Shown: positions 14,519 through 19,747, numbered from the stretch's first letter. The stretch is 64,000 nucleotides of DNA from Rebecca billardiae RCC1528 (GCA_965240325.2 OZ251232.1:2349346-2413345); one strand, 5' to 3'. Program-made: numbers and translations. The notes: generated from the sequence alone by a model not told the origin.

Positions 14519-14684
14519 ATATATATATATATATATATATATATATATATATATATATATATATATATATATATATATATATATATATATATATATATAT
14601 ATATATATATATATATATATATATATATATATATATATATATATATATATATATATATATATATATATATATATATATATATAT
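14519..14684. repeat. (TA)n microsatellite
   Basis: Pure AT dinucleotide run of about 166 bp. Confidence 0.98.
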
Positions 14685-15112
14685 CATCGCCCAGAGCGCG
14701 CTAGGCGGCGCGCTCACTCTCCAAGCCCCTCTTCTGCAGCTGCGCGCCGCTTGGCCGGCGCGCGGCGACGCGTACTACGACCTCATCCTCATCCAGGCGC
14801 CCACGCGGGCGCACGGGGGCGACAGCCGCGGCTGCCGCTTGCCGGAGCTGCTCGCCGCTAGGTCGGCGGGCGGCGACATCGACTACGACCTCACCCTCAT
14901 CCAAGTGCTCCGGAAGGCGCTCGGCCGCGGCGGCATCTGCCGTCGCCGCCGCGTGCCCCAGGCCGAGGCGGTGCTCCATCCCGGCCCCGCTCCCGTAGGG
15001 GGGCAGGGCTGCGGGTGGCGCACTGTCTGACCTGGACGGAAGGCGCGGACGCATTCTATGTGTCTGTTGCACTCTGAGCCTGACGCTTGTCCGATGCTGC
15101 CACGTCGTTAAA
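14684..15112 (+). mobile_element. Truncated copy (~429 bp) of the (TA)n-associated element
   Basis: Apparently identical to 19159-19587 (constant offset 4475), with (TA)n on both sides. Confidence 0.9.
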
Positions 15113-15252
15113 TATATATATATATATATATATATATATATATATATATATATATATATATATATATATATATATATATATATATATATATATATATATA
15201 TATATATATATATATATATATATATATATATATATATATATATATATATATA
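15113..15252. repeat. (TA)n microsatellite
   Basis: Pure TA run. Confidence 0.98.
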
Positions 15253-15402
15253 AACTGCTTTGAAGCAGCCAAGGTGATGCGCCGCACGCGTCGCTCGCGC
15301 GCCCCGCGGCTGCTAATTCAATTACGGGCGGGAGTAATTCCAATGGTCGTCACGGGCGCACGCCGCCGTTCAGAGCGCGCCGCGGCGGTGCGCCGCCGGA
15401 TG

Positions 15403-17394: not shown

Positions 17395-18140
17395 GCCGCT
17401 AGCGACGGGTCCACGTGAACGCGACACAGCCGCGGCGCGCCTTGATGAAGTGGCGCTGCTGATGCCCCGGCCGCTGATGCGCGCGCCGAGATGCCAATCT
17501 CCGCCCAATCCTTTAATTCCGAGCGCTGAATGTGCATGCCGCTTAGAGAGGCTGAGCCTACTGGGAGCACCGAGCACCGAGCAGCCGCCCTCCCGCTCCG
17601 CAGCCAGGCCCAGCTGCCAGGGGGCCGGCGGCGCTGCTCCGCCCTGCGCTGGCGAGCCGCGCGGGCAGTCGCCAGTAAGAGTGCCGCCGATATGAGGACT
17701 CAATACTAGTGATGGATGCATGCTGCTCACGGCGGACTCGTGCCCGAATGCGGAGTGCACACTCATTTCGGCTGGCGCCCGCGCCCGGCCGAGGCGGCCG
17801 ACTGGCGACTCCGCTAATGTCTCTAGCTTTGATTCGGCCCGCAGTCAGGCTATAGTGACGACTCTTGAACCGTGCCAACTTCACGGAGTGCCGCCATCCT
17901 GTCACTGCTGTCGTCAGACTTTGAGACTCAGTCACTAGCCAGTCACTCTGACTCCGGTGGCGCCGCGGAGTCTGCTTGAAGTCAGTCAGCCCGCCGCGGC
18001 CGCGCCGCGGACCGGGCTCCTCAGCGCTACTCAGTCGTCATAGCACTTCGACTTCGTCCCGCGCGGCCGGGGCGGGCCGGCGTCCCGGCCGGCGGGCCCG
18101 CCGTCCCGCGCGTCTCCAGTCTCCTTATTATAATCGTCAA

Positions 18141-18266
18141 TATATATATATATATATATATATATATATATATATATATATATATATATATATATATATA
18201 TATATATATATATATATATATATATATATATATATATATATATATATATATATATATATATATATA
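18141..18266. repeat. (TA)n microsatellite
   Basis: Pure TA run. Confidence 0.98.
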
Positions 18267-19587
18267 CACGCCTTGGCGACGTCGCGATGGTGCCCGCCGA
18301 CGCGGCCCCCGCCCCGCTCGCTGGCCCCGGGTGCGAAGCACACGGGGCTGGTGGGGCGGGGGCCGCATGCCTGTGGTGCTCCCCCATGCTCATCTTCGGC
18401 AATCTCCTGCGCGCTCGTCGGCCTCGCGGCACTCCTGCTTGGCTGCGACATGACTACGACTAGTTCTACGACCTCTACGACCACTTCTTCCTCCCTTCGT
18501 GCGCACGCGCTGGCCCTCGCAGAGCCAGTCGGACGCGGCGTGGGTGGCGGCACGAGCGCGGCCAGCGCGCTCGGCCTGCCTGCCTGCGAGCCTCCATGGA
18601 TGCGTGCGCGTGGGGCCGGGTTCTGCCACCGTTCATTGCCAACAGCAACTGGGCACGGACCTGCGACGAGGCATGCCGCCTTTCCCCACGCGCCCTTCAG
18701 GTTGTCCCGGCTCAGCCGGTCGCTTCGGCGGCCGACGGGCCCTCGGCCGGCTCCCCCTTCCCGGGGACTCGGTGGGGCACCGCCAGGAGTGTCTCGCGGC
18801 GGGCGGGCCGAGCGCGCGGGTCGCCAGCTGACCCCGCGACGTTCGATTCGACTGCTCTGCGCTGGCACGTGCACGCGGAGATCAACCACACGCAGCGGGT
18901 CCGGGATAGGCACTGGCACCCTCTTTCTCCAGCCGGCCGCCGGCTGCATCGCCTCGGGGGGCGATGCAGCAGGTGGACGCCGCTGCACCCATCTGGCCCT
19001 TGGCGCTGGCCTCCTCCGTGCCCTTCGCTCCACCCTAGGTGGGGCAGGGGGTGCGGGGTGTGACGCGCCCAGGGGCCAGGTTCCCCAGCATCAAGCACTG
19101 CATCTGCAGCAGCCCGCCGGCGGGCTGGGCTGCGACATCGACTACCACCTCATCTGCTTCATCGCCCAGAGCGCGCTAGGCGGCGCGCTCACTCTCCAAG
19201 CCCCTCTTCTGCAGCTGCGCGCCGCTTGGCCGGCGCGCGGCGACGCGTACTACGACCTCATCCTCATCCAGGCGCCCACGCGGGCGCACGGGGGCGACAG
19301 CCGCGGCTGCCGCTTGCCGGAGCTGCTCGCCGCTAGGTCGGCGGGCGGCGACATCGACTACGACCTCACCCTCATCCAAGTGCTCCGGAAGGCGCTCGGC
19401 CGCGGCGGCATCTGCCGTCGCCGCCGCGTGCCCCAGGCCGAGGCGGTGCTCCATCCCGGCCCCGCTCCCGTAGGGGGGCAGGGCTGCGGGTGGCGCACTG
19501 TCTGACCTGGACGGAAGGCGCGGACGCATTCTATGTGTCTGTTGCACTCTGAGCCTGACGCTTGTCCGATGCTGCCACGTCGTTAAA
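18267..19587 (+). mobile_element. Longest copy (~1.32 kb) of the (TA)n-associated element
   Basis: Bounded by (TA)n at 18141-18266 and 19588-19624. Its right 429 bp are duplicated at 14684-15112, and an internal part appears inverted at 1-80. Confidence 0.8.
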
Positions 19588-19747
19588 TATAAATATATAT
19601 ATATATATATATATATATATATATTAATAATAACGATTAACGCTCTACGCCCGTACGGCACGAGTGACCGGGTCAGTTTGGGAGTGGCACAAGCAGAGTC
19701 AAGACCCGGTACGGCCAGTGAGACACTAGACACGCATCACTAGACAG

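Follow-up and report, generated by a model that had tools for sequence, protein, structure and literature searches.

Family A, a repeat of the alga Rebecca billardiae RCC1528, is very probably a non-coding, non-autonomous retroposon that moves by target-primed reverse transcription, with an autonomous LINE providing the enzymes in trans. An earlier note on one stretch of this genome had already proposed target-primed reverse transcription, and this reading is upheld by the fixed 3' end, the graded 5' truncation, the TA flanks, and the target duplications described below. The note had offered two identities for the family, the 3' portion of a (TA)n-specific LINE or a SINE-like partner of one; the SINE-like partner fits the data, while the LINE 3' portion does not.

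The stretch that was analyzed, hereafter the window, comprises 64,000 nt of contig C15 (C15:2349346-2413345) in an assembly of 72 Mb and 41 contigs. Its GC content of 65-88% is consistent with the 73% of the Diacronema lutheri genome (PMC8379373). Toward the right end of the window, about 29 tandem copies of a 183-bp satellite (57424-62850) run straight into telomere repeats of the TTAGGG type, among which TGAGGG and TTTAGGG variants occur (62800-64000), and the window consequently represents a chromosome end.

Family A in the window and in the genome

Three copies of one sequence had been noticed in the window, and their positions have been verified (Table 1). The long copy, copy a, differs from the reference copy at locus L008 at 2 of 1321 positions. 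Copy b matches the 3'-most 429 nt of copy a without a single difference, and the reverse complement of positions 1-80 is identical to 19199-19278; the overlapping parts thus contain 0 mismatches, as had been claimed. The two right ends that are visible are also the same, both finishing at ...GTCGTTAAA and then TA. The three left ends differ, corresponding to positions 42, 934, and 974 of a 1362-nt unit. In the inverted copy the 5' junction lies at window position 80, beside a short TA-rich stretch, and the 3' end lies beyond the window. As the note had stated, the long TA arrays of the window all flank copies: there are four runs of at least six TA units, namely the three long runs of Table 1 and 19594-19623.

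Table 1. Positions of family A copies, their parts and flanks in the window, and of family C
Feature	Position	Strand	Remarks
Near-full-length family A copy (copy a)	18267..19587	+	reference positions 42-1362
5'-truncated family A copy (copy b)	14684..15112	+	reference 934-1362
Part of inverted 5'-truncated family A copy	1..80	-	reference 974-1053
(TA)82 run, left of truncated copy b	14520..14683	.
(TA)70 run, directly 3' of truncated copy b	15113..15252	.
(TA)63 run, left of long copy a	18141..18266	.
TA tail 3' of copy a	19588..19624	.	starts TATAAATATA, one extra TAAA-like unit, then (TA)15
3' tail common to family A and the ~310-nt family C	19555..19587	+
Invariant 12-nt box CCACGTCGTTAA	19575-19586; 15100-15111		in copy a; in copy b
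Internal degenerate tandem repeat, ~105 nt, three units	19051..19391	+	overlaps 19128-19425
Family C	L012:2696-3005 region	+	also L005, L011, L094, L098

Beyond the window, family A is dispersed through the genome in both orientations, with a few hundred copies. A BLAST search of the genome with copy a gave 512 candidates; all 40 of those scored have the same 3' end, and 20 of the 40 cover the whole query. The 3'-terminal 19-mer has 232 exact matches in the genome (124 forward, 108 reverse), compared with 0 for a reversed control, and the presence of several copies of one family in the window is far beyond chance. A reference unit of 1362 nt was derived from L004 and L008, both of which extend 41 nt beyond the window copy. 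For an unbiased sample, 60 loci were picked by the 3' anchor alone, yielding 59 distinct copies.

The pile-up of copy ends and flanks that the earlier note had suggested showed that the right end is fixed and the left truncation graded, and that the copies have TA flanks and target duplications. All 59 anchored copies share the 3' end ...CCACGTCGTTAAA, and their 5' ends range from reference position 33 to 1333. Six are full length, with 5' ends at positions 33-47; the 5' ends of the rest lie between 351 and 1333 and become denser toward the 3' end. Copies shorter than 400 nt make up 39 of the 59, the shortest being about 30 nt. The fixed 3' end and variable 5' truncation, first read from three copies, is therefore a genome-wide pattern. 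The median identity of the anchored copies to the reference is 99%, and family A is accordingly young.

The 5' termini of the 20 longest copies all fall inside a 53-nt zone (reference 1-53), and a 24-mer at reference 50-73 has 18 exact matches in the genome. Only three copies genome-wide reach reference position 24, which is at least 18 nt upstream of the start of the window copy, and two of these three contain the full 41 nt upstream of that start. The full-length unit thus measures about 1.32-1.36 kb, its 5' end being ragged; about 18-20 copies, or some 8% of all, are of this kind. A sister family lies at L004:970-1261 (+ strand); it is 90% identical to reference positions ~996-1300, and its 3' end, though different, likewise precedes TA.

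TA flanks and target duplications

The enrichment of (TA)n at the copies, predicted from the window, holds across the genome. A perfect TA alternation of at least 5 nt is found at the start of the right flank in 51 of the 59 anchored copies (86%), and a left-hand TA run of at least 6 nt lies no more than 6 nt from the junction in 33 (56%). The background values, measured across the window and at 0.3-1.5 kb from 30 copies, are 0.4% for the right-hand measure and 0.8% for the left-hand one. The hexamer ATATAT directly follows the 3' 19-mer in 172 of its 232 matches, and overall a TA run directly abuts the 3' end of family A in about 75-86% of copies.

The 5' junction is without TA in 26 of the 59 anchored copies, although 21 of these 26 carry 5-19 nt of it after the 3' end; consequently, some of the TA on the right may belong to the element as its own tail and not to the target. 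In a few copies, one to three extra TAAA units lie between the 3' end and the TA run, and copy a has one extra TAAA-like unit after the first TA. Such units are what reiterative copying of the template end would give. The suggestion that family A may seed or extend TA arrays is compatible with the data. The age of a copy and the extent of the TA run on its right are uncorrelated (Spearman -0.08).

An own tail on the right leads to the question of whether TA is targeted at all. If the right-hand TA were simply the element's own simple-repeat tail, the left-hand TA might reflect an AT-preferring nuclease together with survival of copies in AT-rich, gene-poor islands, which are few in a genome of 73% GC. 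The 21 copies just mentioned agree with such a scheme, as does the base composition around the copies, since flanks 100-150 nt away are 41-48% AT compared with about 31% AT at 0.3-1.5 kb; in addition, many unrelated elements are also located in TA runs. Nevertheless, TA on the left, at most 6 nt from the junction, is 70-fold more frequent than in the local background, at 0.3-1.5 kb from the same copies. Furthermore, target duplications start with TA units, and repeated and ultra-short insertions are stacked in single TA runs. Passive accumulation of this kind is therefore unlikely, and insertion of the retroposon into TA repeats is the preferred reading.

Other elements occur beside some of the copies. 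Family B, a repeat of more than 1.5 kb ending in ...CAGAAAAGTTTAAT (L014:1-1500, L026:1-1500, L021, L051, L059, L070), adjoins the 5' junction without a gap in four family A copies, each truncated at a different point, and lies within 25 nt of it in two more. This adjacency could be due either to insertion into the short TA flank of family B or to template switching onto its RNA. At L021, 1 kb of family B is inverted, and no Pfam domain was found in nine open frames of the family. In the right flanks at L025, L064, L065, and L082, the end of another element, with a small hairpin (GACCGCG TTC CGCGGTC), lies directly against TA runs.

Target duplications of 8-12 bp that include unique bases are present at five loci (L056, L072, L076, L077, L100). 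Examples consist of TATAT and three or four unique bases, or of somewhat more TA joined to unique bases. In copies with little TA on the right, the boundary between TA and unique sequence was sought on the left as an 8-mer; 5 of 45 copies were positive in this test, four of them solidly so, versus 1.1% in a control of mismatched pairs. Most target duplications are unreadable because both flanks are TA. In the right flank at L056, a 14-bp sequence is duplicated around an AA dinucleotide beside a normal copy, as if a second insertion had aborted after depositing just the final bases of the element.

These duplications also bear on whether the copies could have arisen at the level of DNA, through either a Helitron-like rolling-circle element that inserts between A and T or the erosion of full copies from the left by unstable TA arrays. 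Helitrons have a 5' TC, a 3' CTRR, and a 3' hairpin, and their insertion between A and T leaves no duplication; long TA arrays, for their part, are fragile. Both properties speak for such an origin. However, the termini of family A are not TC...CTRR, the element instead ending in GTTAAA, and duplications that include unique bases do exist. The truncated copies are, moreover, dispersed with differing flanks, and the truncated end lacks TA in 26 of the 59. An origin by such a process is extremely improbable, and a Helitron as such was rejected on the GTTAAA end, the variable 5' ends, and the duplications. Terminal inverted repeats, which would have spoken for a transposon of another kind, were absent on self-comparison of family A, as were terminal direct repeats; the only repeat found was the internal threefold tandem repeat of ~105 nt.

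A retroelement using a tyrosine recombinase was likewise considered and rejected. The DIRS and Ngaro elements are marked by split direct repeats, in the order A-body-B-A-B, and by the lack of truncation. Self-comparison of family A revealed no split repeats, and truncation is the rule.

Coding content, the shared tail, and the putative source of the enzymes

No gene was detected in family A. One frame is open over 412 codons, and the GC content at third positions is coding-like (0.88-0.94) over about 300 nt, at reference 903-1200 (window 19128-19425). In this part of the window the open frame has a threefold 35-codon repeat with a recurring 10-residue motif and is without detectable relatives. 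No Pfam family was found in five open frames of family A, and the ESM Atlas held no relative of the 412-codon frame; a HMMER scan of 1.84 billion representative proteins gave one marginal match to it (E = 5e-4). Variants among 79 copies are spread evenly over the three codon positions, and a reverse-transcriptase motif is absent from all sampled family A loci. Although the open frame and the 300 nt of coding-like composition leave a coding role, past or present, conceivable, family A is treated here as non-coding, perhaps including a stretch of coding origin.

Structural RNA genes were also sought. No Rfam family was detected in six loci, including L003, L004, and L008, and no tRNA in four loci, with ARAGORN finding none in L031, which contains a full copy. 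By these searches (ARAGORN for L031; Rfam for L003, L004, and L008), family A has no detectable SINE-type head derived from tRNA, 7SL, or 5S RNA.

As an alternative, family A might represent the 3' portion of a longer, autonomous LINE specific for (TA)n, in which case the 1.3-kb copies would themselves be truncated. The LINE-like truncation pattern, the open frame, and the third-position GC at reference 903-1200 speak for this. However, the 20 longest copies all stop in the one 53-nt zone, only three reach position 24, and none extends past position 1. None is linked to a reverse transcriptase, and extension of the longest copy leftward in search of one, as the earlier note had advised, gave just 41 extra nt, followed at L008 by an unrelated, 5'-truncated, tRNA-derived SINE in the opposite orientation. 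The open frame, furthermore, has no Pfam, Atlas, or usable sequence relative. A search of the genome with the RVT_1 profile identified 54 loci in about seven groups, and none of the 19 loci on C1-C12 (eight contigs) has a family A tail within 10 kb. Taken together, these results make it highly unlikely that family A is a LINE fragment, and an autonomous LINE was rejected on the lack of a Pfam match, of a reverse-transcriptase motif, and of RVT_1 within 10 kb of the tail on C1-C12.

The tRNA-derived SINE found upstream of the L008 copy is a family in its own right (L034-L042; L031). It is about 155 nt long, contains motifs that resemble box A and box B, and has a tail ending in AAATAAACTGTA. 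There are at least 367 BLAST candidates, some of the copies are 5'-truncated, and the family is not associated with TA runs.

A second non-coding family shares the tail of family A. A different 3' end, ...GCATACCACGTCGTTAA, is found in the flanks of sampled family A copies; it too precedes TA and has 429 exact matches in the genome. The unit to which it belongs, family C, is about 310 nt long; three copies have the same start and the others are truncated. Copies of just 14-20 nt are stacked inside single TA runs at L046, L058, and L084. Families A and C are alike over about the last 45 nt, their bodies being otherwise unrelated, and A/C hybrids are present at L020 and L101. The 12-nt box CCACGTCGTTAA preceded by C or T occurs only seven times genome-wide, and the box is thus confined to the tail types of families A and C. 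In folding, the 3' tail does no better than shuffled sequence (z = -1.2), and a possible 5-bp stem within it is invariant, so that a structured signal gains no support from covariation.

From the anatomy of the copies, we infer the donor of the enzymes, the positions of the nicks, the pairing, and the role of the box. In this model, family A RNA would be transcribed from a few full-length source copies. An endonuclease would nick one strand within a TA run or at its edge, and the freed TA end would pair with the 3' end of the RNA (...GUUAAA plus some UA) and prime cDNA synthesis. Reverse transcription would often abort early, generating the 5' truncations, and the second strand would be cut about 8-14 bp downstream. 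The shared tail and its 12-nt box, present on family C as well, may be the signal that the enzyme recognizes.

A coordinate cross-check did not reveal an autonomous partner with the same tail, and the trans-mobilization step is consequently one that we infer. The cross-check also covered family C: 10 reverse-transcriptase loci on C1, C3, C5, and C7, with all seven groups represented, had no family C tail within ~8 kb, and a search of the genome for PF14529 gave no match.

A nuclease of another type would be expected if family A were instead a non-autonomous derivative of a Penelope-like element. Elements of the Naiad clade often insert in (TA)n and are 5'-truncated, with target duplications that are obscured (PMC8557442), all of which recalls family A. 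However, a search for GIY-YIG found a single match in the whole 72-Mb genome, self-comparison gave no pseudo-LTR or tandem-copy structures, and neither a hammerhead nor any other Rfam match was present in the six loci. A Penelope-like parent is thus very improbable, and a LINE remains the favored donor.

The shared tail has led to a further, more tentative hypothesis, which is possible but rather doubtful. In this case a short tail, consisting of the box CCACGTCGTTAA and a UA repeat, would be a portable minimal signal, by which any RNA might be copied by a restriction-type LINE that itself lacks the box. The (TA)n repeat would serve as both the landing site and the site of primer pairing, and every insertion would leave behind a new short TA tract able to grow and to attract more insertions. 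The role of poly(A) for L1 is a parallel to this double role. If true, the hypothesis would explain why the TA arrays of a very GC-rich genome are nests of transposons.

Significance and comparison with known systems

To our knowledge, the transposons of haptophyte algae are almost undescribed. Families A and C together provide about 660 or more dated and precisely bounded insertions, which can be used to investigate how a nuclease and a reverse transcriptase choose TA repeats and to ask whether insertion makes new microsatellites. Copies as short as 14-30 nt would help to define the minimal RNA signal. For the related Diacronema lutheri, the genome paper gives only bulk repeat percentages (PMC8379373).

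A full-text literature search found no report of (TA)n as the target of LINE-type elements or of elements that depend on them, whereas such a preference has been reported for Naiad (PMC8557442) and for a rice MITE. Naiad elements share with family A both this preference and the presence of truncated copies, but their GIY-YIG nuclease and their tandem or inverted compound insertions have no counterpart seen in family A. The Micron MITEs of rice, as they are cited in PMC3812793, are small non-coding elements in TA microsatellites. In being non-coding and in their location they resemble family A, but they are DNA transposons with terminal inverted repeats and are not 5'-truncated.

Among LINEs, several are specific for microsatellites: Dong for (TAA)n, Waldo for (ACAY)n, Mino for (AC)n, Kibi for (TC)n, Koshi for (TTC)n, and Togen for (TG)n (PMC3812793, PMC4640811). 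As is proposed for family A, they insert by target-primed reverse transcription into a simple repeat, which directly abuts the 3' end of the element. However, they are autonomous animal elements defined by reverse-transcriptase phylogeny, whereas family A is gene-less, has (TA)n as its target, and resides in an alga. The LINE clades with microsatellite-specific members (R4/Dong, R1/Waldo, Tx1/Kibi-Koshi, NeSL/Togen, and CRE) are assigned from that phylogeny and from the type of endonuclease.

Further parallels are the non-autonomous retroposons that depend on LINEs, such as SINEs, the internally deleted SIDE elements of R2, and SVA-type composites. With these, family A shares the lack of enzyme genes, a fixed 3' end, 5' truncation, and target duplications, as well as a high copy number derived from few sources and the presence of one 3' tail on unrelated bodies (A and C). 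Its tail differs in ending with (TA)n rather than poly(A). Compared with SINEs in particular, family A has no tRNA, 7SL, or 5S head, and its 1.36 kb is twice the usual SINE limit. In its behavior, family A resembles SINEs and LINE derivatives with internal deletions, but in its head and its size it is not a SINE. The general picture of how such elements move is unchanged by family A; it is the target that is unusual.
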